Below are positions 17,018 to 62,042 of a stretch of 64,000 nucleotides of DNA, in pieces. Within the stretch, counting starts at the first letter, position 1. Each line of letters starts with the position of its first letter. Source of the DNA: Magallana gigas (lineage: Eukaryota); contig NC_088858.1 of NCBI RefSeq assembly GCF_963853765.1, positions 12,958,001 through 13,022,000 of the forward strand, in the 5' to 3' direction. A program made the translations under genes and the position numbers. Below the pieces are notes generated by a model, which worked only from the letters and a program-made list of their open reading frames with translations, searched no databases and had not been told where the DNA came from.

Positions 17018-20000
17018 ATGACAGACATGAAAGAAAACACACTTGAAGAGAAAGAAAGCGACAATGAAAATGGTCGACCGAGTAGTGAAATCTCCCTGGA
17101 TTCCTCGGATTCTAACAGAAAGAGACCCTCCCTGCGGGGCAGTGCCAAGTTCAGGAGGGTCCCCTCTGCAGCCAATAGCCAGGGATCTATGGAAGACAAA
17201 ATGCTGGCCCTGAACGCTCTGCTGTCGGACAGCCTGTTGATCACAGAGTTTCCCGGAAGGAACGGGGAGGTCAGCAGAAACGGGAAAACCGAGGACGACG
17301 ACACGCTGAAAGACGAGTTTGGTGACGATCTCAGTGACGACGATTTCGAAGAGCTTCCAGAAGATGGCAGATCTTCCAGGGATGTCGACTATGACACGGA
17401 TTTAGATATGGACTATGATGGTATAGTTAATAATCACTCTGATGGTATAGTTAATAATCACTATGATGGTATAGTTAATAATCACTATGATGGTATAGTT
17501 AATAATCACTATGATGGTATAGTTAATAATCACGTTAAAATGTGTAGACATACTCTAAAGAAAATAGAAATGGTTTTTTTTATCATACCAGTTTTCAATT
17601 TATTTTTCTATTTATACATCCATTTAATGTTACCATCTTCGCTAGCTAAGATGAGAATAAACGAATCGGATACAAAAAAATGTCCGAAACCTTCAATCAT
17701 TATTAAGTACGCGGAACTTGCAGAAGGTATCTTAAGAATATCATAATGATGTTTTCAGAATGGATCAACGAAGCCAAAAGGGAAATAGAAAACGACAAAA
17801 CGGGAGAAAAGAAATACTTGCACATGTGTGAGGAAACAGGAGTTATTCCTGCGTCATATTTTCTGAATCACATACAAGAAAAAGAATTCAGTATGAAATA
17901 TCATGGACTCGGTCCAAATGGTGCTAAGGCCATCGCATGGCCGCTAAAGGTATATTATTGAATGCAGGTATTAGTATTTAGAATAACCAGAACTCCTGAA
18001 ATTATTATACTTTGATATGCGTTTAAAAGAGCAATATGAAAATCTATTTAAGTTTGCTATTGGCATTATTCATCATGGTATTGCTTAATGTAATGGTGCT
18101 CTAATCATTTGCTTCAGACGAATAAGAAGATTGAGAAAATAAACCTGGAAGGCAATTGGATTGAAGCTGAAGGATCAATATATCTGGCGAAGATGTTGAA
18201 AAATAATATTTATGTCACAGAGCTGGTAAATCATTACATGTAAAACAGATATTTTGTACAAAAATTGAACCATGACCAACACGTTTTTAACACAGTTTAG
18301 TGAATTTGAGTGAGCATAATAGTTTCCGTGAAATTATCGTGAAGCCAAATCTAATTTTAAACATTACCATATACATCAGCAATTGTTGAGACATTATTTG
18401 TATGATAGTACAATGACAAATACCAATACTATGCATGAGAAAAGTGTAAATATATCATAGGAAAACGATGTGCTCTGTTTACAGACGCTGAAAACAATAT
18501 TTTTGTCAAAACATTCTTTTGAATGCTTTTGCTCTGATTGATTTTAAGATTAATTTATTTAAATACATTGTGGACTCAAAACTGATCATTTAATAGCCAT
18601 ATGACGAAGAACTTTTTATATGCATGTACATAAAATATATTTGGTAAAAATTATAACCAAAACATATGCTTGATACTTAAACATAAAAAACAATGTATGT
18701 TTGCAGCATTTAGCAGAGAATAGGATAGGCAACGAGGGAGCAGAGGCAATCAGCGACATGTTACAGAAAAACGACATGATCTACTCACTCGATCTGTCGG
18801 GCAACTCCATTGAAGACTACGGTGCTGAAAAACTATGTAGAGTGCTTTTGGTAAACAGGTTTTTGTCAAATTTGAATACTATTAAATCATTAAAAAAACC
18901 TTGATTAATTCGCAAGCTTCATCATTTGACCCTCTCGTAGAAGACTTTAACTGATTACATGTAGTTTATTATGCAATAACTTTTTCATTTTAAATAGAAC
19001 ACTTTGAAAACATGTTTGAAAAATAGGCAAAATGAGTGATATTTTCAGCGTAATTTATTTAATGGTCTCCTTCTGCATATCATATTTAGAAAAATTCCTC
19101 TATCAAACATCTGTACCTTGCCAACAATAAGTTCGAGGAAAGGGCGGCTGGCTGGCTCCGAGAGGTCCTGACGAACAATGAAACACTGGAAACTGTTGAT
19201 CTAAGCTGGAATCATCTTAGGACAAGGGGAGCTATCGCCATTGCAGAGGGTGTTCAGGTAAATTCTCGATTTCTATGGGAAAAAAAATGAAATAAAGCAA
19301 CATGCATATACAACTTGCATTTTAGGATACAATGTGCAGCATTATTTTCTGCTTGTTTTAGTAAGCGTTTTTTTATGTTAATAGGAGAACTATGGTCTGC
19401 GAATACTCAATTTAGCTATGAATGGGTTCGCGCAAGACGGAAGTGAAGCAATGGGGAAAGCATTGAAAAATAACCGGACTCTCCTGGAACTGGACCTTAG
19501 TCATAACCGGATACCCGAGGCAGGGGCCACGGCCATCAGCCAGGGTCTACAGCATAACGACACCCTCAAAGTACTCAGGGTCAGTTCTCACTACAAATAA
19601 AACATACGCAGGCACGTAGCATCTTTTTGAAAGTTTAAAACTTATCCGAAGTCTTGACAATCAATTTTTTTTTCAGTGATAGCTACCCTCATAACCCGCA
19701 TGAATCATCAAATAAAAATTTTATTGTTTATATTTACATATTCTTTAAACAAATTAATAATTTGACTGTTAAAAGTAAGAAAATTAACTATATTATTGTT
19801 GATGTACATTATTAGGTAAAAGAAACAGCCAAATCGTCTCCTACAGGAATTTTACATCATCATGATTATTTCGTGCAGTCCGTGATTTTTCTTAGGTTGC
19901 TGAAGGTTACGGCCAATCGATAAACGGGGCCTGTAGATTTCAGTCCTGTCAGACAAAGCTATTAATTATTATTAATTTTCGTAAGAAATAGAGGGAAAAA

Positions 20001-23704: not shown

Positions 23705-26700
23705 TCACACAGATCTTTTTACTAACATTTCCGAAAATTGGAGAAATTTTCCACTGGAAATAACATTATACCAAACAGAATCGCGATGAATTTCGTTGAA
23801 AGGCGCGTTCAGATTGGTGGTTGTACAAGACCGATACCACCAACCGGAACCGCACTGGGCAGAACACTTTACGGCATTGTCGTGATCAAACGTGTAGAAG
23901 GTCTGGTTAACAATCGAGTGATCCCTGAACTCATCGCTTCCTAATAAAAGATATAATAAAATGATATTAATCAACTTAATTTTAAAAAAAAAATAGATGG
24001 ACTCGAAATTTCTTTGAATGTACATCTTCTATTATATGCACCTTACGTTTTTCAATGGTCAAAAGTAGTCAATTTAGTAATTTGTTAAAAGATTCTGTAA
24101 ATGTAAATATAAACAATACAATGCTTTCTTTGAAGATTCATGCGGGTTATGAAGGTAGCGATCAGTTCAGAAAAAAAAAATATATAACCCTTGAACATGA
24201 ATCATCAAAGAAAGCATTGTATTGTTTCAATAATTTTCCCAAAATTGTCTTAGGAGGCCTGGGTGGTTGTGGCCAGATTTAGACTATATTGACCTCCTTA
24301 AGAGGGAGAGCTCTGTGTAATGACACTGTATGTGAAGATATTCAAACTTAAAAGCTAAAATAGGAGGAATTTTCAATACTAGATAATTGTTTAATATAGC
24401 CAAAAAAAAATATCCAAACATTAAAGGTAGATCTAATGAACAAATTGTTGACAACACGTCTTTCTTAAAATGGATAAAGAACAATTATACTTAATGCAGT
24501 AGGAATTATGTTAAACTTTGTTAAATAATCTACAAAAATTAGATTACCAAAATTAACAGGAACATTGGATGAATATGTTCGAGAAATGTGTCCCAAATGA
24601 AGACGGTAGCCATCAGCCTCATTGGATATAGAGAAAGAATCATACTCCGCCCAATATGTGTTGCCATCTGTCGCCTTCATTTTTATGTACAAAGAATAGT
24701 TGTTACTTGTAGTCAGTAGATGGATCAGATCGTTTCCTAAAAAGTTTTTAAGATCACATTCATATACATGTATTTACATTTCCCAGCGATTTTGTCTGTC
24801 ATAACACTACGAATTGGTTTTGGTCCAATACATTTCATCAATAACTACAATGTATTTTTAAAAGATATTTAATCATACAATTGATAAAAATTAAATAAAA
24901 ATAAGTAATAATGAATCATTCTTGGAATATTACGGTCGGACGCTATCAAATATATCGTAAAGCCCTAGCTTTGGGCTTTATTGGATAAGATCACCCTATT
25001 TGATCACCTCACAAAACTAAAAGAATTATTTCTTATTCCTTAAATGCATGCCATTAAAATCAACCACACATGTATCCTAACATATCATTCCGGATCTAGG
25101 TTCTGGTTTATTCGTCGCCTTATTTTACGCTTTTTCTCAAAATGCTATTTTTTTACGTTACAATATAAGAACTAAGATTACCCAGCCAATGGTTTCCGTT
25201 AATGTTCCCGAAGCCGTCCTTGTAAGCCTGCCAGGTTGTGTTGAAATCCACCCTTGGATTATCCCGCGCCCTGGACTGAATTACCTGTACATAATCTATA
25301 TGTAAAATACCAGACAAGTTTGAATTTAAGGACATTGCTTCATGTATATGACCCAAAAGATTTAAATGATTAAATCTAAATTTAATAAAACTGATGATCT
25401 CATCAATGTACATGTAAAAAGTTCAGTCGGCACATCCATGTAATTATTGATATACAATTATATACTTTTATTGCATTTGTGTACGATGACATGATAAATA
25501 TTCAATTTACTAGCTCGTTTTAGTACAGCTTTTCTTATATACGTAGTTATGTAACCCGAACAAATAAAAAAAAAATGACATCCCCCTCCTAAAAAACTCA
25601 GAATTCAGAATTGCACCTCAGAGAGCACAAAACTTTATTCATTATCACATATTTTGAAAAATAATAAAGCTGTGTAATTTTTTTTTTTCAGACGTAAGGA
25701 AATCGTAAGATGTGAAGGATACCTAAATGTGTACTTCGTGTATTGGGATTATATATTTATCTTGTCTCAAGACCAGCCTGCTTTATACATTGTTTAAATT
25801 GAGTTAAGGTTAGATGTTTATATAAGAACTACATGTAAAGTAATTGCTTTTTTTTAATCATTTAAATTATTCATAACATTTTTTGTGAAGCATGAAGTTT
25901 GTTATATTGTACCTCATTAATAATATTTCTAAACTATGCTTCATTTGATTGGTCTAAATAGCCACGTGACAGGACGAATAGAATATAGAATATCCCAGGG
26001 AATAAATATAAGAGTTTTCAAATGGTCTGAGTGAAAAAAATCGAAAATAATCATACAAAATGAATAAATCTTAAATACTGAAATCTTTTAATGCTTTCTC
26101 ATCAAAGTAATTAAACTACATTTAATTCATACTTTGAAAATAGAAAATAACCTCGAAATGTATACATTTACAACGTTTTCCCATGTACTTTATTTGAGAT
26201 TGAAAATCCAATGTACCCTTTATAATCTTATATTTTTGGTATAACAAACAATTTATTACACAAATGTTCAGCAGATATGAGTGTTTTTCCCCCCTAGAAA
26301 ATAAATTGTTTCCTTCTTTAACTAATGCCCCCGGTAAATATCATCTGTTTATTGTTAGGGAAATAAATTTTCATATTGCTTTACCATCGTGCAATAATAC
26401 ATGTAGTACATTATTTTTCTTCATTTATATCGCCAAACATGTTTTCCTATCAATATGAGCAAGTTTTGTTAATAACATTATGATTAATACTCTATGTTTT
26501 GAGAAGATACAACAAAGGACATCAGTCCTCATTACCGTCCAGCCTCCGCCGAGTACAGCCCCTTCACACTTGACACGGACGGGTCTATTCGGGTCTTTAT
26601 AGGGGTAGATCGAGTAGACCCCGGTCTGATGCTGGCCATTCTGGTAGATATCCGAACAGTCTACGGGAAGTTTACCTACAAGGAGTAGCCACATAGTTTT

Positions 26701-29700
26701 TTATATCAGTAGATTTTGCAAAACACAGACCAAAGATGTAAATCGTAGACTAAGTGTTTTAAACAATTAGAGTTCTCTCCCCCTAAGGCTTTAAAATTTT
26801 GTTTTTTAAAGGGGATTACCAAATAACAATTATTTTATTAGACTGAAATAATATATAAAGCAAATTTTGTCAAATGTTACATCAATAAAAATACATAGTG
26901 TTTTAATAATTATTATCCTTAACTTTTAACCATTAAAAAGAATTGATAAAAAATGCACTTTGGTTTAGATTTTGTGTATTTACGACTTGCGATGTCAAAA
27001 ATTAAAGGAGCGATAATTAAAAGATTCTCCAGGCAAAGAGTGAAACAGGTCTAAAATTCTTGTTTCAGTTTAGGAGTATTCACATTATGTCTTGAGTAAA
27101 AGAGGAAATTATAGATGAATGTTGTATGTTTCTTTTTCAAATCAAACGTATAACAGAGCAACATACAGTTTGAGTTACACAAGTCGGTCCCACAACACGA
27201 GGAGCAGGCGTGTACGTATCTCTTTCTACCAAAGGCACTGCCTGGCCTGTAGGCGTCACATATCTTGAAAAAAAAAACCAATATGTGATTCAACGCTGTT
27301 TCAGAAACCCTTTTTAGCAATCAATGTTAATTCTGAATTATTAAACACAGGCATATTCATAAGAAATAATTAAGGCACTCTTTTATAAAATAATTTTTAA
27401 AAATATTTTCATTGAAAAAAAAAGGCTAGCAAATTAGTGCTATTTTGACTCCTGAATTTAACAGGAAGAGTTAAAAAGGATAATTTATACTTTGAATTCC
27501 AATGTGTTGTTGGTTCCAAATTTCTTCTATCATTACTGACCTGTCTCTGTAGACACGATGATGAATAGAATCGTTCACCAAATTCATGGACTTCGTGGAT
27601 GTGACATACCTACAGTATATTAACAATGAAAAAAAAATAATAGATACCAAAAATATTAAAAAAGAAACAAACGCGGGCTATGTATTTTTTCTGTAATTAT
27701 AGTTATTTTTATATCCGCTTGGAGCAAAAAAACAAAGATAGCATTTTATAGTTTAGATATACAATTGACGTATCTTCAGGAAGTTTGATGTTCGTGGTCA
27801 TTTTATACTATTAGGTGATATTAAACTTCCTTAGAAAAAGAGCTCTCTATAAAGACACATGGTAAAATATTGAAGTTTTTGCGGGTTAAAATATGTTTTT
27901 TTCCTAAAGTAAATACATATAGCAGTTTAAATCCAAAAGAATCGTAGTTAGATTAAGATCTGCTGGGTAAGTCGTTGACCACCCAGCCTCCTTAAAACCA
28001 TTCAGGTGTCATGGTCGTGGTTTTACATGTATACTGTGGTGACTAGATTTACCTCATCCTCGTTACAGACTCGGACCGTTCTACACAGGGAAGGGTAATG
28101 GTCGTGGTTGTACATGTATACTGTGGTGACTAGATTTACCTCATCCTCGTTATAGACTCGGACCGTTCTACACAGGGAAGGGTAATGGTCGTGGATTTAC
28201 ATGTACACATTGGTGACTAGATTTACCTCATCCTTGTTACAGACTCGGACCGTTCTACACAGGGAACGGTAATGGTCGTGGTTTTACATGTATACAGTGG
28301 TGACTAGATTTACCTCATCCTCGTTACAGACTCGGGCCGTTCTACAAAGGGATGGGTCTGTTGTCTGTTGACAGCTAAAGCAAAGAGGTCCCCTGACCGA
28401 AGGGTAGGCTGAGTATAAAAAATAAAATATTTCAGAAATCTAGGAATTTTGTCAACTAAAGCACGGAGTTCCTTAAAACAAAGGAAACGATTTATATAAA
28501 TTATTTAAGTGGAATTTAAAATCTCAGAATTCTTAAAATACACACAGAAATTAGAAATGATTTATCAGAATAAACATCAAATCTCTGTTTGGAATAAAAA
28601 AAGTTAACATAATATATCATAAATTGATAGTTATAATATATCAAGATTAGAATAAAAGAACATTGAAAAATGATTAAATTTTTTTTTGTAAAATATCAAA
28701 TATGTTTTTGTTATCATGAATATTGTTTAATAAATATTTTGGATATATCGTATAATTTATCATATATTATTTGAAAACCATGTTGGGGATATTCTTTTGG
28801 AAATAAACGTATCGGTTACATGTTTAACAAAATAATAAAATCGCTTACCTGTGGAATTACATCCGTGACTGTTGCACGCGTTACCATGACAACACTCCAC
28901 GCACTGCTCTATCCGGTTGTTCGACGAAGCTTCTAATGGACTCCCGACAACATTTGTCAAATTACAAAACTGAAATAATATTTTTTGTAAAATCGAAAAA
29001 ATGTATTTTTAGCACACCTTCAAATATAGATGTATGGAATTCAGCAAAACATTAACATATTACAGACAAAGGTCTAACTTTCTAAGTCTAAGTTTATTGA
29101 TATGTTGGTATAAATAGCATATCATACAGTATACGAAATATACTCTAAGCAATAAAGCTAACTTGATAAAGTTGCGTTATACCACTCATACTTACTGATG
29201 GCGAATGACATCCCGTATTATACAGTATCTCTCCATTATAGTTTGTATATTTTTCCGTATAGCAGACCTACATGCAAGTGAACATGTTAAAATAGATAAT
29301 GTTCATGTAGACATACATAGATTGTACCTGTTAAATAACCGGGCTTATTTCTTATTGCTTAATAAATACATGTAGAATGTAAATACTCGTAGTAGAAGTT
29401 TTATTAATATAGTTATAATACTGAGTAATTATTATCATGTTATAAAAATATAACAAAATTTTGTAAAAACTAAAAGAACAACAAGAGATGTGTGTGAAAC
29501 ACTTATGCCCCCCTCCCTTGGAAACATCCACAAAGAAATGAACGTAAACTGCAAATAACTGTAATTTTTCTATGTCCAAGAGCCATAACTCTGTAGAAAA
29601 TTGCTCGATCGTACCCAATATCGAACTTGACCTAGATATTATCATGATAAACCTGTATACCAAATTTCATTTCAATATGTTCATCCTCTGCGAAGAAAAT

Positions 29701-31168
29701 GAACGGAAACTGCAAATAACTGGAATTTTTCTACGTCCAAGGGCCATAACTCTGTTGAAAATTGCTCGATCGTACCCAATATCGAACTTGACCTAGATAT
29801 TATCATGATAAACCTGTATACCAAATTTCATTTCAATATGTTCATCCTCTGCAAAGAAAATGAACGGAAACTGTTGGTGGACCGACCGACCGACAGACCG
29901 ACCGACAGACCAACCGACAGACAGTAGCAAAGCAATATACCCTCCCTTCTTTGAAGGGGGCATAATTATCATCTTAAAATCAAATTCTCCGTTCATTGAA
30001 TGATCAAGTATATTGACCATATGTAAAGTACTCTATAATTGGGCCATCGCACCTGTCCTTCCTCACATTTTCTGATGTAGTGACAATGACGAGGGGAGAT
30101 AACTGATGAACAGCTCAAGCAAAACAAAGGTTCCTTAGCTGTAAAGGAAAACAAATACAAAAATGTACTGAAATTGGACAACGGTATTTATTAATTTTGT
30201 GCTTAATTCAATTCTCAGTTCACAATATCTCGACTTGCCTTCAACGTAATTATAAAGATTGACTGAAATCAACAAGCCAACCAGTGACGACAGTTTCCCT
30301 GTATTAAAAGAAACCAAATAGTACCATTATATCATCTGATATTTACATAAATAATTAAACTTTATATTCACAGTAGTAAATTCATTATATAGTATGCATA
30401 CGCATCACATTTTAGAATAGGGCTTATTCGCTCCTGATTTACTCTTTATTGATTATTATCAATAACTGCATGTACTTCCATTAATTATACCAATAACTGC
30501 GTGTACTTCCATTAATTAATTTAATGCTTAAACATTATTTATACCTGTCCAATAACTGCATGTAGTTACATTATTTATACCTGCCCAATAACTGCATGTA
30601 GTTACATTATTTATACCTGTCCAATAACTGCATGTAGTTACAATATTTATACCTGTCCAATAACTGCATGTAGTTACATTATTTATACCTGTCCAACTGC
30701 ATGTAGTTACATTATTTAACTTTACCAACAAATACATGTACTTCCATTAATTATACCAATAACCACATGTTGTTCGATTACCGGTAATTATACAAATAAC
30801 TGCATGAAGTTCTATCAGTTATACCAATAACTGCATTTAGTTCCATTAAATATACCTCTAAATGCATGTAGTAACATAAATCATTAATTTTACTAAACAC
30901 TGCATGGAGTTTTTACAAGTCGTACAGTGTACATACCTATTGAAAGCGTCGCCATTACTGATACTAATTCCTTTAAGTTGAACAACTGTAATCTTCCTCG
31001 AATTTGATAAACGTGTTTAGAGATAAAATCGTCACACAAGAGAAAACTTGGATTATTCTGTACTAGAATTCAATCTAATTATTTTCAGGAAGGAGAGCTG
31101 TGTGGTTTGAAATTTTTTTAGAACGTCCGATTACCACAGAAAATTGCGAATGATGTTTTGTCCATCAT
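23705..31168 (-). CDS. Secreted fibrinogen-related protein with two N-terminal Ly6/uPAR-like (three-finger) Cys-rich modules (~433 aa, 12 exons)
   Basis: Exons in transcript order: 31168-31135 (tentative start), 30298-30239 (GC donor), 30138-30053, 29267-29196, 28969-28849, 28408-28314, 27609-27541, 27263-27167, 26675-26536, 25284-25182, 24736-24548 and 23940-23705. Phases are compatible throughout. FBG motifs include DCSDI, GGGWTVIQSR, DFNTTWQAYKDGFG, HWLGNDLIHLLT, AEYDSF, TFDHDN, GWWYRSC, NLN and SEMLVK. Each N-terminal module ends in CxxCC(x4)CN. Confidence 0.88.
28011..28352. repeat. 87-bp tandem repeat x~4 spanning the exon-6 splice donor of the LU-fibrinogen gene
   Basis: On the minus strand, GAGGATGAG|GTAAATCTAG recurs with exon-side ends at 28314, 28227, 28140 and 28053. 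Confidence 0.95.
29480..29965 (+). mobile_element. HINE/Helentron-type non-autonomous element carrying 161-bp satellite units (pearl/Cg_HINE-like)
   Basis: The element starts AACAAGAG and has subterminal inverted repeats TTATGCCCCC (~29503) and GGGGGCATAA (29956-29965). It contains two 161-bp tandem units, a (GACC/GACA)n microsatellite at ~29880-29920 and a 3' hairpin, matching the described modular layout of oyster HINEs. Confidence 0.85.
30533..30717. repeat. 36-bp minisatellite x~5 in intron 1 of the LU-fibrinogen gene, with degenerate flanking copies
   Basis: Unit ATTATTTATACCTGTCCAATAACTGCATGTAGTTAC. Confidence 0.9.
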
Positions 31169-34100
31169 CTAAAATGGACGATTTCTCGCTATTTGTTATT
31201 TTGCAAACCACAGTTGACCAAGGCTGAAAATAAAACTGTATTTCCACCCCCTCTATTACTCACATATCATCTATTAAATCTCTTATGTATATTATGAATA
31301 ATAAATTTTTAAAGACGGTGAAAATATAAGAAATAATAGTATACATAACAGATGATATAAGGTAAACAGATGAAATTCAGACAGACCGTAAAATTCATAT
31401 TTTGCAAATACGGATTTACCATTTTAATTTTAAAAATATACTGTTTTGGTCGAGGGTTATCTCTCTTCTCTTATATAAGTTAATAACCAGAAGAATTTAT
31501 TGTAAACACATATTATAAAGGCACTTTTAAGTGTCACCTGCTGATTTTAATGGGTTGGCTGTATTTTGAGGTTTATTACTTTTTTATTAAACGCATAGTT
31601 TTGATAATAAATCTTTGCCTATTCTATCCAACACGAGGTCCGTGTTTCTTAATTAAGGGTCACCTGAAGATCATAGTAAATTAACTCCAATATAAAAACC
31701 CTTCTGGAAGGAAAGATAATTTTTTTTTGAAAAAATACCGATATTTTGTAATAAAAAAAACCATTCTGATTCTTAAAATGGCAATTTAAAATGACAAAAA
31801 ACCACGCATATAAAAGAAGATGATGTCTACTATGATCTTTATTTGAAAGTAAATTACCAGACAAAAAATATCGGATTTCTATATCTATTTAAATTGTACG
31901 TTACTATTCAACTTCAGGGTCGGTTAGGGTCTTTTTTTCTTTCAAAGAATTGTCCTATGGGTTCTTATTGGTTCCATCAAACGGCTGCAAAATATCGAGG
32001 TGACCCTAGAGGGATATATAGGCTTCGTGTTTTTATTAAGCGCAAAGACTATATCACAAAATTGCGAAGCTAAGATTAATGGGGATTTTCTTCTAAATCC
32101 TTATACATGTTAATGTTTTATATCTAGCATCATAACGAGTCTTAAACACAAATTTTCCATTGTTTGTCATTTCTTATGGAAAAAAAAAATGTTAAAATCC
32201 ATGGCCCCAAGGTCAAGGAATAAACGGAATGAAAATCTTTGAAAATCTTTTAATTTACCAAGCCTAGATAGTAACTTTTTTGTCGCCTACTTTTTATTCA
32301 GAATTGACTTGACTTAGCTTCGCAATTTTTGGATATTGTCTTTGACATGAATATATAATAAATCTTCAAAAAAAAAGATAGAAAAATGGTATCCTTCAGA
32401 TGTTCTTCTGCTTATCAGAGAGCAATCTCCCACAAAAATATCGCGGTCTTAAAAAGCATTAGCGGAAGGGAATTTAAACTGCATCTGTGATATAGGTAGG
32501 TAAAACAGGTGAAAAACTCGGTGTCCCCATAAGTGACAGCATCGTTTACATATAATCAGGGGGTTTAATCCGGTGCCTCGTTGTTCCTGTCAACTCGTTG
32601 TTCTAAGAGGTCTTTGTTTGATACTTCAAAGACATTGCATATCATCAGGGACATCTTCGCGTAAGACAAAAAAGCTTGCCATCTTGGCAAGGGTAAACTC
32701 TCCACAGTGGAAACAGTGCAGTTTTTAAGTGTTTATTTATGCGGAGATTTAAATACTTGTTATAATTTGCTCTCAATACAGATGATGTATGGGATTTGGT
32801 TGCGTGGCTAATACACCTAATCGGCCGACATTATGAATTGCTGGCGAGAATTAAACAGATCAATGCTTCTATACAAGAATTAGCGGGCACTTGATCGCAG
32901 GGCTCTCGTGTTTCGCTTTTATTTTCAAACGGAACTACCTAATGGAATCGAAAATCGACCAAAGTATAGATGCTGATTTTAAATAGAGACTAACTAAGGA
33001 ACAAATGGGATATTATTGGTTCGAATACAACCGACTTCACCTGTAACAAATTTTATTGTCAATACTAATATAGACGCAATCTACTATAGAAGGTAAGACT
33101 TTATGAATGTAAATTATCAATTTCACAATATTTACGTTGATATAACATTTAAAGTACAAGAACTTTTGAAAATTTTTCGTACGATCACCTATATCTAGTT
33201 GATAAAGTGACTTAATATTATTATTCAAAAAGATCTATTGTTACATGTTTTAAAACATCTGTTTAATCATTTGATACAGCAGAGTGCTAGTACCCGTTCC
33301 ATTAACTATTTAGTAAACTCAAATAGGTCCTTTTGTATATCTTATCAATTCGATATATCTCCCGAATTAGTCGACACAATAACCATTTTAACGGTATCAA
33401 TAGGTTGGACTTCTCAATATAACAGAACTCCGTTTAAAGTCGGTGTGCTTATTTTGTTAAAACACATATGACATGTGCTGTATTGAAATGTTTAAATATC
33501 CCATAGAGAAGTATCCGTTTTTGGACGTAATGATTTCTCAACAAAGGCGGGATCTAACCTGAATACATTGGTATGCCTCTTTGGGGGACATTGGTAGATA
33601 TCTGATAAAATAAGATTGTAACTTTGTTCGAAGTTGGATCTCGACAGTGTTATCTTTAAATCGGAATCAGGGCGTTATATCGGGACATTCTATATTGTAT
33701 ATCATTGGAATATGATCTGATATCATTACTAACAGTAGAAAACATTCAAGTCAGTTGGCCTGAAAAGCTGGATTTCTATTTTTCTCATAAACATGATCCT
33801 CAATATATACCCGAAAACGGTAAAAAATTAAAACAATACCACTAGAAAAGTCTAGTCTTTTAATTTCTACCATTTAGACAATCATTAATGTTTCCGTAAG
33901 TACGAGCGTTTTAAAATCTCATCCAACTTCAATGCTTCTTTTAACCAATCAATCTATGATTTGCTCGATATCTTGTGGTTGAACAGTTTGCTTTGAAGGA
34001 TTATAAGGAGAAATGAAATGCAAATTGACCAGGCGTGAATCAAAACAAAGTGTTTTTCAAATCTAACCCTTTAGGCAGAAATATTCATTTCCAAGTCACA

Positions 34101-54543: not shown

Positions 54544-55874
54544 GGAAGTGTCCTTAAACGAATGTAAGTATGATCTTTATCATATATATCACGTGAGAGG
54601 AATTGTTTTGTTTAGAATTTTTTATATGATGTGTCTGATGTGTGATCAGAATCCCAGTATTAAAAAGAGTGGTCTCAGAGGATGTCAATTAAGTTTTCAA
54701 ATGTATGTCTATTGATTATCTAATTAGTTACACCAACCGGACCATGTCACTGTATGATCGTACTTCGTGATACGTTTAACAATGAATAAATTATTTCTTC
54801 CAAACATAATAAATGCATTATTTTGATATCAAACGTTTTTGTCTATAATACCCCATCTATACTACTATACAAAAAAAAGACTAGAATTTTTTGCCTTTAA
54901 TACCGAGAAATCGGAAGAGTACTCTGTTTTGTTTTATGTATTTCAAACATCATTGGTACCTAAAGATCATCAATTTGTTTTTATTTTTTCTCAATCAAGC
55001 TTCGCTAATAAATTATCAACGAAAATTCCTAACAAAAATCCGGAAATCATCTGGATTTTTTTGGATTTTACAATCTTGCACATGCGCATCACATTCAAGC
55101 TAAATTACGAGAGGCTCTTTAGTTTATCTTTCCGCAATAGCACATTTGCATTGATAAGCTCAGAAATAATAAAACAAATAGAGCCGAGCTCGTTGCAAGC
55201 AACGAGGAGATCTTCCGTTACAGCTTCCAGCACTAAAATGGATATCTCGGCAGAAATAAAACTAAGCATGTCTTTGGTAAGACATATGTTTTACTGACCC
55301 CTGATGTCTAGAGACGTGTCTTGTTAGATAGACTACTGTGTATCAATAGGTAAAGGGCTAATGATAAGGCAGAATTAGTTGGTATTAGTACGTCTCAGCA
55401 TATGTATGGACTACCTTATGTAAGAGTCATAAAAAGGGGGAACAAAAACCAGACCGCAAAGACTACTACTGAAGATATTTTCAATAACTTCATTTAGCAT
55501 TTGGAAAAACCTTATAGATAAACCTCGTTATGATCAAGATACTAAATATTGCAGTAATAGAATAGGGAATTATTTTTTTCTTAAAGATATTTCCAAGTTT
55601 TAAACAGTTCCGTATCATTCATTCCGCAATTACCGCACGAATTAACAAAATATTAGGAACTTTAGAAAAGCCCATAATGTAAACTTAAAACGCCATATAG
55701 ACGTACCGGTAGACATTTCAGATAATTAAAATAATGTGTCTATTTCAGATTTTGAAAGTAATTTTTCTTCTTTGGTAACCATGTTATAACAGAATTTTCT
55801 ACCAGGGACCTCTAGTCAAGATTATGAAGACCATTTCCTGACTAGAGAAGCTTCAGAAATGTGTTCTTTATCAG

Positions 55875-60300: not shown

Positions 60301-62042
60301 ATAACTAATATATTTGGGATACATGTAAAATACAACTTTATGGTTATTAAGATGTACCTGTCAGGTTTAAATGAATAATTGTTTTATTTTCAGACAGTAG
60401 TTCACAAATAGCCTTTGCTCCCTCGTTCCCGATTTTGTTATCACATAGCACCTGGAATTTGTAATATTAATTAAACAGCATTGTCATGGCGATGTATCTC
60501 TACATGCATATACACAATATGTACATGTATAACTTTAGCACACAACTTCAGTTCAGTTATGTTCAGTTCAGTTTATTTCACTCAAAACAATGGAATCGTA
60601 CATGAGGTTCATGAACAAGACTATTGTATCAACAATTATGCCGATCATACCAATTCTGTGACGTAAACATTTTCTCGTAGAACTCTCGTCAGATACGTGG
60701 CTCCCTCTCCCAGGATGTAGTTGCCCTCGAGATCTATCTTCTCTATCACTGTATTCACCTTTATTCAAATAGAATTAAATCACAATTTTCTCCAAACTGA
60801 TAAAATATAATTCTAATTATTACGGTTTATTTAAATAAAAGAGCGTCCAAACTACACATAATTATTTCAATCGTACAAATTCAGCATGAAAAGCTACGCA
60901 TAATAAAATTCATCATTATTTACAATCCACTCAGTTCAGCGGAGTGGATCCTAAACTACTGGCTAGGAAAGATTAAAATATATTCAATCATGTTGGAATC
61001 CATCTTGATCTTAATTTTACAGGCACTACATACTAAAATCAAAAAATTATAGTGTAACCTTTTTTGTACACTAACATGTTTTTCACGTTAAAAAAGCTCT
61101 AGGTTGTCAAGGTTGGTCACAATTTATTTATAGCCAGCCTGATTTTGAGATTCCCAGTTTAACAGCATTCGGTGGTCAGTGTAAAAATCACGGTTATAAC
61201 CCACTGATTGAATTAAAAGGGCGTGGTCTTACCTCCAGTGGTGTGGCTATTGCTTTCATCCCCTGAGGACCAAGACTGTGGTATTTCATGACTAGCTCTG
61301 TGTCATGCATATGTTTTAAGAAGAACGTGATCGGCTGTACCCCGATTTCTTCGCATTTCTTTAAATATGCTGATTTTCCACTTGTGTCGTGATCATATCT
61401 GTCTGGGAATATTAGCTCTAGAAAAAAAACCATGAACCAATTAGAGTTTACAATAATGCATTGGTAACATTTTTGGTAATACATTTCATTTGTTGTTTCC
61501 AAGATTGATTTCCAGGATAAAGAACCTTTCTTACTTTCTGCATCTACTTCTAGATCTGTGTCATACTCTGCAGCTTTTGCCTCGTCGTCTGAGCCGATGG
61601 AAGATATGTTATCCAAGTCTTCACCAAACTCGTCTTCCAGTTCATCATCAATGTCCTCAATGTCGTCCTCAATTTCCTGAGGACGACCCTCGATATCCCC
61701 TCCAAAGAAAACAGTGTCCCTGGGTTCGAGTCCGTCCTGTTCATCGAGGAACCCCGTCTGTGGAAGTTCATCCGGTCCGAAGTCATCCAACAGCTTTCTG
61801 TATGACGGGCTTTGGATCCTGGCATCGTGTGTTATCTCCTTCAAACGAGTCAAGTCTGTGATGAGACCCGCGGGATCGGTACGTCTGCTTCGAGCAGACG
61901 ACACTCGACTATCCGGACTTTCAGATCTTTGGTGGGAGGGAAGAACAAGCGGAGGGTCGTCGGAAGGAGCCGGTGATTTTCCCTGGCTCGACTTTTGTCT
62001 GGGAGTTCCAGCTTTCGCTGAACGGTCTCTTGCACTTGGCAT
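57379..62042 (-). CDS. LRRC74: LRRC74-like leucine-rich repeat protein with two EF-hands, paralogue 3 (~638 aa, 11 coding exons)
   Basis: Exons in transcript order: 62042-61535, 61417-61233, 60758-60651, 60451-60358, 60224-60175, 59365-59198, 59021-58827, 58699-58604, 58291-58010, 57826-57741 and 57523-57379. The GVQPITFF...YHSLGP signature is present, with EF loops DRDNSFTISLEE and DKDGNGEIDFSE. Confidence 0.9.
59335..59790. repeat. 64-bp tandem repeat x~7 spanning the splice acceptor of the 168-nt exon of paralogue 3
   Basis: Units start at 59335, 59399, 59463, 59527, 59591, 59655 and 59719. On the minus strand each reads TTGTAG|AGAAATGCGTCAATAAAGACGTTAATGCTCC, except the last, which is degenerate. 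Confidence 0.95.

Follow-up and report, generated by a model that had tools for sequence, protein, structure and literature searches.

Gastropod fibrinogen-related proteins (FREPs) consist of one or two immunoglobulin superfamily (IgSF) domains joined to a fibrinogen-like domain (FBG), and ficolins of collagen joined to an FBG. Here we describe a minus-strand gene of the oyster Magallana (Crassostrea) gigas, at 23705-30955 of a window of 64,000 nucleotides (contig C6:12,958,001-13,022,000 of a 564-Mb assembly; coordinates without a contig name refer to this window). The gene is intact and transcribed, and its product is a secreted mosaic protein in which an FBG follows two cysteine-rich modules, the first an LU (Ly6/uPAR) domain and the second predicted to be one. 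Like the gastropod FREPs (Biomphalaria glabrata) and the FReDs/FREPs of bivalves, the protein is secreted, ends in an FBG, has a non-collagen N-terminal part, belongs to a lineage-specific expanded family and has a presumed role in recognition. It differs from gastropod FREPs in carrying two LU domains instead of IgSF domains and in having neither an interceding region nor a coiled coil; its subfamily is small, with two loci in the genome, and we know of no somatic diversification in it.

LU domains have been defined as units of 60-90 residues with ten ancestral cysteines that pair 1-5, 2-3, 4-6, 7-8 and 9-10, the tenth being followed by an Asn, and with an exon set, typically of two exons, that has phase-1 borders (Leth et al., 2019; PMC6600238). 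Consecutive LU domains with their own exon sets and phase-1 flanks occur in uPAR, C4.4A, TEX101, CD177 and the zebrafish two-LU proteins (PMC6600238), but all of these are glycosylphosphatidylinositol (GPI)-anchored and made of LU domains only, whereas in the oyster protein the pair continues into a globular head of another kind. Furthermore, the first LU of mammalian multi-LU proteins lacks the 7-8 disulfide, whereas both oyster modules keep the ten ancestral cysteines and add one pair, and multi-LU proteins use two exons per LU as opposed to three in the oyster gene. The nearest described architecture is that of Paramonov, Shenkarev and Lyukmanova (Acta Naturae, 2026; PMC13719153), who mined invertebrate genomes for LU domains by hidden Markov model and folded them in silico. 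Under architectures “not previously observed” they list mollusc three-finger proteins that carry C1q domains, a fibrinogen-like (FreD) domain, or Ig or MAM domains, and they call the functions of invertebrate three-finger proteins unknown. The LU plus fibrinogen-like combination (their Figs 2B(5) and 4(5)) is alike by described architecture, the comparison not being one of accessions, and the combinations with C1q, Ig and MAM agree with our genome results, while their text offers no exon structure, 12-cysteine variant, tandem cassette, RNA evidence, paralogue census or function. A literature search returned no paper mentioning the accession or the automatic oyster names of the protein, and none combining fibrinogen-related proteins, oysters and Ly6. 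The architecture has thus been noted already in silico, and the gene stands in RefSeq under a generic fibrinogen name; an earlier reading of the sequence alone, which knew of no characterised example, was right in that this is not a named or characterised family, and its own refuting condition, an architecture already known as a named family, applies only by half, since the combination of LU with fibrinogen is listed in PMC13719153. What is added here is a model backed by RNA with a corrected 5' end, the 12-cysteine variant, the three-exon phase-1 cassette, its conservation over oyster genera and the finding that one genome also places it before heads of the C1q and IgGFc-binding-like types.

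The splice model of the sequence-only reading, rebuilt from its splice-site anchors, has 11 exons, all bounded by GT-AG introns, and an open frame of 413 residues in which exactly the motifs named by that reading recur. Approximately 15% of the words sampled from the 7.7-kb stretch were present in public oyster RNA runs, a share close to the exon fraction. To the region 25200-31199 we assigned contigs of three runs from three studies (X1, X5 and X14) together with raw polyA reads from about 1% of a fourth run (X20). Seven of the ten junctions of the model were matched exactly by RNA: 25279|26531, 26672|27164, 27263|27541 and 27606|28311 in the 3' part, and 28408|28849, 28969|29196 and 29265|30051 in the 5' part. 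All seven were found in a single X1 record (record 1; 1518 nt, depth 56), which runs from the second FBG exon up to the first exon of LU1, and again in X14 record 4 (778 nt), and five of the seven were spread over two shorter X5 contigs. Since single contigs span both parts, the cysteine-rich exons and the FBG exons belong to one spliced RNA, and the concern that transcripts might assign them to separate genes was not borne out. The X1 contig continues for 694 nt past position 25200, consistent with 443 nt of remaining coding sequence and a 3' untranslated region; this length and the RefSeq model lend indirect support to the two 3' FBG junctions (25182|24736 and 24548|23940).

These data also bear on whether the locus could be an annotation or assembly artefact, in which one model joins two neighbouring genes, one for LU and one for FBG, or else a decaying pseudogene. 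NCBI does model a paralogue (P0004) as LU-LU only, and the two 3' FBG junctions lack direct RNA joints. However, spliced RNA contigs from three studies connect LU1 and LU2 to FBG exons 1 and 2 by exact GT-AG joints, all 428 codons of the corrected model are open, the architecture recurs in Crassostrea, Saccostrea and Ostrea, and LU2 is linked to the FBG by five residues with a cysteine codon split at the junction. The artefact reading is already effectively refuted by the RNA data, and we hold it to be highly improbable.

The 5' end, by contrast with the rest of the model, had to be revised. The first exon proposed earlier (31168-31135) ends in phase 1, is in frame and would supply only an 11-residue leader. 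Because RNA depth was zero at 31000-31199 in all four runs, we regard this exon as unused. Instead, a joint at 30138|30239 (CT..GC on the plus strand) was present in X1, X5 and X14 and in one raw X20 read. It removes an intron of 100 nt (30139-30238) of the GC-AG type, with the donor GCAAGT, between the signal-peptide exon and LU1. A further joint, from 30297/8 to 30936/7, was present in an X5 RNA contig; it leads to an ATG inside 30937-30955, and upstream of this ATG there is no in-frame ATG before a stop. The corrected model has 12 exons and 1287 nt and encodes 428 residues in a frame that is open throughout; as the true N-terminus starts in 30937-30955, the coding span is 23705-30955 and not 23705-31168. 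This model is identical to the C. gigas protein XP_011416631.1 (P0006, “fibrinogen alpha chain-like”) at 426 of 428 positions, including the same N-terminus. That N-terminus (MATLSIGKLSS...NYVEA) combines a basic residue, a hydrophobic core, V at -3 and A at -1, and the only 19-residue Kyte-Doolittle window above 1.6 in the whole protein begins at residue 1; no second hydrophobic, transmembrane or GPI segment was found in the 428-residue product. The signal peptide claimed by the sequence-only reading is thus present, but it is encoded by 30955-30937 and 30298-30239 and not by the exon originally proposed.

The product is arranged as a signal peptide of about 27 residues, LU1 (approximately 30-119), LU2 (approximately 120-208) and the FBG (approximately 209-428), and contains five N-glycosylation sequons. 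All exons lie on the minus strand. The coding part of exon 1 (30937..30955) holds the ATG and the first six codons (MATLSI), ends in phase 1 and is followed by a GTATGT donor, as seen in X5 RNA; exon 2 (30239..30298), bounded by RNA joints and followed by the GC-AG intron, holds the hydrophobic core and the cleavage region (..KLSSLVGLLISVNLYNYVE/A). LU1 is encoded by exon a (30053..30138; cysteines 1-4, finger 1; phase 1 in, phase 0 out; RNA), exon b (29196..29267; cysteines 5 and 6, finger 2; phase 0 on both sides; RNA joints 29265|30051 and 28969|29196) and exon c (28849..28969; cysteines 7-12 in the pattern C-x2-CC-x4-CN-x3-C; phase 1 out; RNA). LU2 follows the same plan, with exon a (28314..28408; phase 1 in; RNA joints 28408|28849 and 27606|28311), exon b (27541..27609; phase 0 on both sides; RNA) and exon c (27167..27263; ..CSSCCGTDLCNSN, the last cysteine codon being split by the junction; phase 1 out; joints 27263|27541 and 26672|27164). 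The FBG takes up four exons. Exon 1 (26536..26675) is placed by RNA, frame and tblastn, and exon 2 (25182..25284) by tblastn and by the joint 25279|26531 in three runs. Exon 3 (24548..24736) has GT-AG borders, is in frame, is recovered by tblastn and agrees with P0006, and exon 4 (23705..23940), with the P domain, the DHDN motif, the region of Cys376, Cys380 and Cys389 and the stop codon, is defined by GT-AG, frame, tblastn and alignment.

Beside LU2 exon a, Tandem Repeats Finder (TRF) reported an 87-bp tandem repeat (28011..28357; 4 copies, 93% identity) whose unit corresponds to the last ~44 nt of this exon plus its GTAAAT donor, copied into the downstream intron so that three spare donors result. 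As alternative donors or additional coding sequence these copies were rejected: read-through from the exon meets a stop, and the RNA joints use 28314 only.

Both modules conform to the LU definition at the level of sequence. They are 90 (LU1) and 89 (LU2) residues long, and each has 12 cysteines in the same order, as the sequence-only reading had stated, with spacings of 2-8-5-5-17-5-20-2-0-4-4 in LU1 and 2-8-5-5-16-5-17-2-0-4-3 in LU2; the two align in register at 29% identity. The ten ancestral cysteines are present in both and line up with the CD59-type pattern (C-x2-C ... CC-x4-C), and an Asn, invariant across the family, directly follows the tenth of them (C111-N112 and C203-N204). The additional pair consists of the 8th and the 12th cysteine in order, three residues before the CC and three to four residues after the Cys-Asn, respectively; the two probably pair with each other in a sixth disulfide, Cys102 with Cys116 in LU1 and Cys194 with Cys207 in LU2, that would fix the C-terminal tail. 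The cysteine framework is invariant in 23 module sequences. Seven proteins, drawn from Crassostrea gigas, C. virginica, Saccostrea and Ostrea, agree in all 24 LU cysteines as well as in the Asn and in several Gly and Pro positions. In a Pfam scan restricted to residues 28-208 of P0006, UPAR_LY6 (PF00021) scored 26.9 bits against a cut-off of 24.8 and Toxin_TOLIP (PF00087) 22.7 bits against 21.2, and among 14 family members, 13 matched Toxin_TOLIP and 10 matched UPAR_LY6. When the orthologue P0001 was scanned as a whole protein, both scores (20.7 for UPAR_LY6 and 18.7 for Toxin_TOLIP) fell just below the cut-offs. Because the LU scores of the full-length protein miss these cut-offs, public annotation displays PF00147 alone. 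For oyster immunology this means that the N-terminal half of a small, conserved and expressed FReD subfamily has been invisible in public annotation. A profile built from the 23 module sequences and compared with all Protein Data Bank (PDB) sequences gave seven matches, all seven of them to Ly6/uPAR proteins, with SLURP-1 (E=0.001) and PSCA (E=0.0011) ahead of LYPD6, GPIHBP1 and LYPD6B.

Fold comparison provided additional support for this assignment, more strongly for module 1 than for module 2. The AlphaFold2 models reached middling confidence (pLDDT 63.7 for the LU-LU tandem and 64.6 for module 2 alone) and were aligned exhaustively against 48,161 PDB representative chains. For module 1, the top 39 rows were all three-finger folds (Z 7.4-2.9 over 58-87 aligned residues), led by GPIHBP1 (Z 7.4, 77 residues), CD59 (Z 6.4), LYPD6B (Z 6.4) and PSCA (Z 6.2) and including Lynx1/2, kappa-bungarotoxin, mambalgin and ectodomains of TGF-beta-family receptors; unrelated folds appeared at Z values of 2.5 or below. 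For module 2, three-finger folds occupied 30 of 31 rows, but with Z at most 4.3 and over fingers 1 and 2 only. Foldseek searches of the PDB listed LU-fold proteins or their complexes in 50 of 50 rows, but with E values of at least 0.04; since these values are weak, the fold reading rests on the exhaustive aligner. Module 1 is shown by these results to be an LU domain, while module 2 is assigned as one mainly from its sequence and its homology to module 1. The proposal that a 12-cysteine LU variant takes the place of the IgSF or collagen part likewise held up: Pfam gave only LU-type families and no IgSF domain in residues 28-208, nowhere in the protein do four or more G-x-y triplets follow one another, as a collagen stalk would require, no coiled coil was found in the product, and LU2 abuts the FBG.

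The FBG head is complete, in agreement with the earlier claim. Fibrinogen_C (PF00147) matched the orthologue P0001 with E=1.8e-45 over profile positions 4-185 of 221, and both conserved cysteine pairs of the FBG fold are in place (Cys213/243 and Cys376/389), only five residues separating the last LU cysteine from the first FBG cysteine. The relatives of known structure comprise angiopoietin-1 and -2 (2e-34 to 2e-30), FIBCD1 (1.5e-31, residues 5-220), MFAP4, FGL1, tenascin-R, ficolin-1 (2e-27), ficolin-2 (~1e-27) and techylectin-5A (7e-27). The DxD calcium-site motif is kept, DHDN aligning with the DQDN and DRDN of ficolin-2 and tenascin-R. What the protein has in common with ficolins, tachylectin/techylectin-5A and FIBCD1 (E 1e-27 to 1e-31) is the FBG fold together with its two disulfides and the DxD motif.

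The exon structure sets the two modules apart as a unit. Intron phases across them read 1 | 0 | 0 | 1 | 0 | 0 | 1, each module being encoded by three exons (cysteines 1-4, 5-6 and 7-12), roughly one per finger, so that the two-exon layout of LU domains is not encountered; the FBG part is entered in phase 1, one cysteine codon being split over the LU2/FBG junction. When the 40 residues of LU1 exon c were compared exhaustively, by HMMER, with 1.84 billion proteins, true matches came from oyster proteins only, P0001 and P0004 among them; the matches to a bacterial Big_1 protein (P0002) and to P0003 and P0005 were set aside as unrelated Cys/Gly-rich or repeat similarity. Word-indexed searches located the LU-LU-FBG architecture in C. 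virginica (“techylectin-5B-like”), C. gigas, Saccostrea echinata (“ficolin-1-like”), Ostrea edulis and one transcript assembly. They also found protein models made of LU-LU only (P0004, P0011 and P0015), some of them named “prostate stem cell antigen-like” by NCBI, and one LU-LU relative that carries an IgGFc_binding domain (PF17517). A predicted isoform from Ostrea edulis (P0009, isoform X2) has a hydrophobic insertion of 33 residues (approximately 146-178) exactly at the boundary of LU2 exons a and b, resembling the outcome of intron retention or of the use of an alternative donor. The second LU-LU-FBG locus of the oyster genome spans about 93 kb with very long introns (C6:54.187-54.280 Mb; L002-L005). 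Its NCBI model P0004 (248 residues) ends after LU2, and FBG exons follow in the DNA on the same strand; P0004 is probably an under-annotated, truncated version of this second gene.

In all, the LU-LU cassette is found at about ten places in the oyster genome, this second LU-LU-FBG locus being one of them, and elsewhere it is joined to other heads. Cassettes followed by one large (~416-codon) IgGFc_binding-like exon lie in tandem genes at C1:70.35, C1:70.37 (70.364-70.369) and C3:44.84-44.86 Mb, and at the first of these (L001, C1:70345500-70354000) the phases are exactly 1-0-0-1-0-0-1. Dozens more copies of the large exon are scattered over the genome, for instance in a cluster at C1:39.6-40.9 Mb. 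At three places, comprising five loci, LU-LU exons lie directly upstream of three C1q exons (C1q E 1e-22 to 6e-5): a head-to-head pair at C6:9.755-9.780 Mb (L007 and L008), C4:36.36-36.39 Mb (L006 and L011) and C5:27.78-27.80 Mb (L009); in L007 (9069-9605, minus strand) one open frame covers both the last LU exon and the first C1q domain. The C1q- and IgGFc_binding-linked paralogues have the same 12-cysteine tandem, the same 3+3 exons and, where checked, the same phases as the present gene, and differ from it in the C-terminal head and in an LU-LU part that is only about 40% identical. Fold clusters of AlphaFold DB were matched over 140-200 residues, with E down to 1e-12; among the names of their entries are C-type lectin, Ig-like, MAM, ShKT, GPR158/179-type and Toll-like receptor 13, although such names are no proof of fusion. 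We infer from these arrangements that exon shuffling has moved the LU pair as one cassette bordered by phase-1 introns. The suggestion that each three-exon module, with phases 1-0-0-1, is ready for shuffling was well founded, the same cassette with identical phases being joined to other heads in this genome. In oysters, LU can thus be viewed as a true exon-shuffled module, a phase-1-bordered LU-LU standing before three different globular heads. In a tree of LU-LU regions only the IgGFc-binding-type clade was supported (100/98), and because the FBG-linked rows from Ostrea and Saccostrea were left unplaced we make no claim on a single origin of the FBG fusion.

As to function, we think it somewhat more probable than otherwise that the protein belongs to the expanded FReD repertoire of bivalves as a soluble factor for bridging or recognition, whose FBG binds a target while the LU pair engages a host protein or self-associates. 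The FBG head would form the target-binding end, through a calcium-stabilised pocket in the P domain and with a glycan or another surface ligand as target. The rigidly attached LU-LU would form the protein-binding end, directed at a haemocyte receptor, at a humoral effector or at itself, and the protein would thereby bridge the target to a host component. The LU pair is read as the protein-binding end because all characterised LU domains bind proteins, via their fingers or their concave sheet (PMC6600238). The combination of LU-LU with FBG offers a concrete pair of domains for work on binding partners.

Several observations weigh against this interpretation. The second P-domain cysteine is followed by Thr and not, as in ficolin-2 and tenascin-R, by His (the relatives of the oyster protein have T, T, T and D); this His we take to line the acetyl pocket in the TL5A and FIBCD1 structures. 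Because the pocket His is replaced, acetyl-sugar binding is not to be assumed, and we do not file the protein as an acetyl-binding lectin. In further contrast to ficolins, techylectin-5A and FIBCD1, the loop that follows DHDN has lost three residues relative to the canonical one, and a fifth FBG cysteine (Cys380), lying in the P domain, leaves an odd, free cysteine in the mature protein; it is kept in the C. virginica and Saccostrea orthologues and is missing from Ostrea and from the paralogue type. Lectins usually depend on oligomerisation for avidity, and the oyster protein has no obvious device for it, lacking the collagen stalk, the N-terminal cysteine multimeriser and the transmembrane segment of those proteins; FBG-FBG association or the unpaired Cys380 are candidate routes to multivalency. 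The structural side has its own weaknesses, namely the pLDDT of 64-65, an unmodelled finger 3 in module 2 and Z scores of at most 7.4 that are individually unremarkable. In addition, the polyA run X20 (~1% sample) holds no exon reads beyond the single raw read at 30138|30239, and the recognition role is a prediction from sequence. Finally, the best solved relatives of the FBG, the angiopoietins, bind a protein receptor.

This last point leads to a different explanation, that the protein serves not in immunity but as a ligand in signalling or adhesion, its FBG binding a protein receptor and its LU pair acting as the modulator of a membrane receptor or channel, be it in development, in nervous tissue or in tissue remodelling. 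The top rank of angiopoietin-1 and -2 among the solved FBG relatives (E 2e-34 to 2e-30) and the replacement of the acetyl-pocket His in five of five orthologues and paralogues would be in keeping with such a role, as would the fact that characterised LU proteins, such as Lynx, SLURP and LYPD6, mostly target receptors (PMC6600238 and PMC13719153). The scores of FIBCD1, the ficolins and techylectin-5A, however, are nearly equal to those of the angiopoietins, and the DxD calcium motif is kept. Moreover, the same cassette occurs here on C1q heads and, by AlphaFold DB entry names only, with C-type lectin, and C1q and C-type lectin domains are typical humoral recognition domains of bivalves. We therefore regard a signalling or adhesion ligand as a possible, if minor, alternative to the bridging or recognition factor that we favour.

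The LU-LU pair might also be the active effector itself, toxin-like or a CD59-like complement regulator, with the FBG serving only for targeting or multimerisation. Toxin_TOLIP is the Pfam family matched by most members (13/14), the fold comparison brought up CD59 and three-finger toxins, and the LU part shows the strictest conservation of its cysteine framework. However, Toxin_TOLIP and UPAR_LY6 form one superfamily, so that the Toxin_TOLIP match reflects the fold and not an activity, and there is no evidence for venom or secretory-gland expression; cassette-only relatives (P0004, P0011 and P0015) do exist, yet P0004 appears to be a truncated LU-LU-FBG annotation. An effector role of this kind seems quite unlikely to us.

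A broader proposal takes the reuse of the cassette as its starting point. The 12-cysteine LU-LU could be a bivalve stalk or adaptor module that serves unrelated heads (FBG, triple C1q and IgGFc-binding-like; by entry names only, C-type lectin, Ig, MAM and TLR) and couples these sensors to one host partner or effector pathway. The corresponding part of vertebrate ficolins, C1q and collectins is a collagen stalk. We advance this proposal tentatively and consider it on the whole unlikely; if the cassette were such a common adaptor, it would provide a route of effector recruitment in a lectin system without collagen.

The introns of the gene hold further repeats. Intron 1 contains a minisatellite with a 36-bp unit (30448-30872; ~13 copies, 75-89% identity), and the intron between LU1 exons a and b (29400-30000) contains a 161-bp repeat in two copies (29531..29873; TRF) together with a (GACC)n tract. 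RNA on the 161-bp repeat family was abundant, with a summed contig depth of up to ~16,500 (X5) and about 100 raw reads in the 1% sample of X20, nearly all in the same orientation, although the repeat lies outside the mRNA. Since these sequences show many variant letters and loose ends, the transcripts stem from many genomic copies, and the family is probably an element of the SINE/MITE type (short interspersed or miniature inverted-repeat transposable element). Elsewhere in the window, the three longest open reading frames, at 17018-17746 (plus strand; 242 aa), 54839-55297 (plus strand; 152 aa) and 61194-62042 (minus strand; 282 aa), had no Pfam match at E <= 0.01, and the window as a whole holds 205 N.

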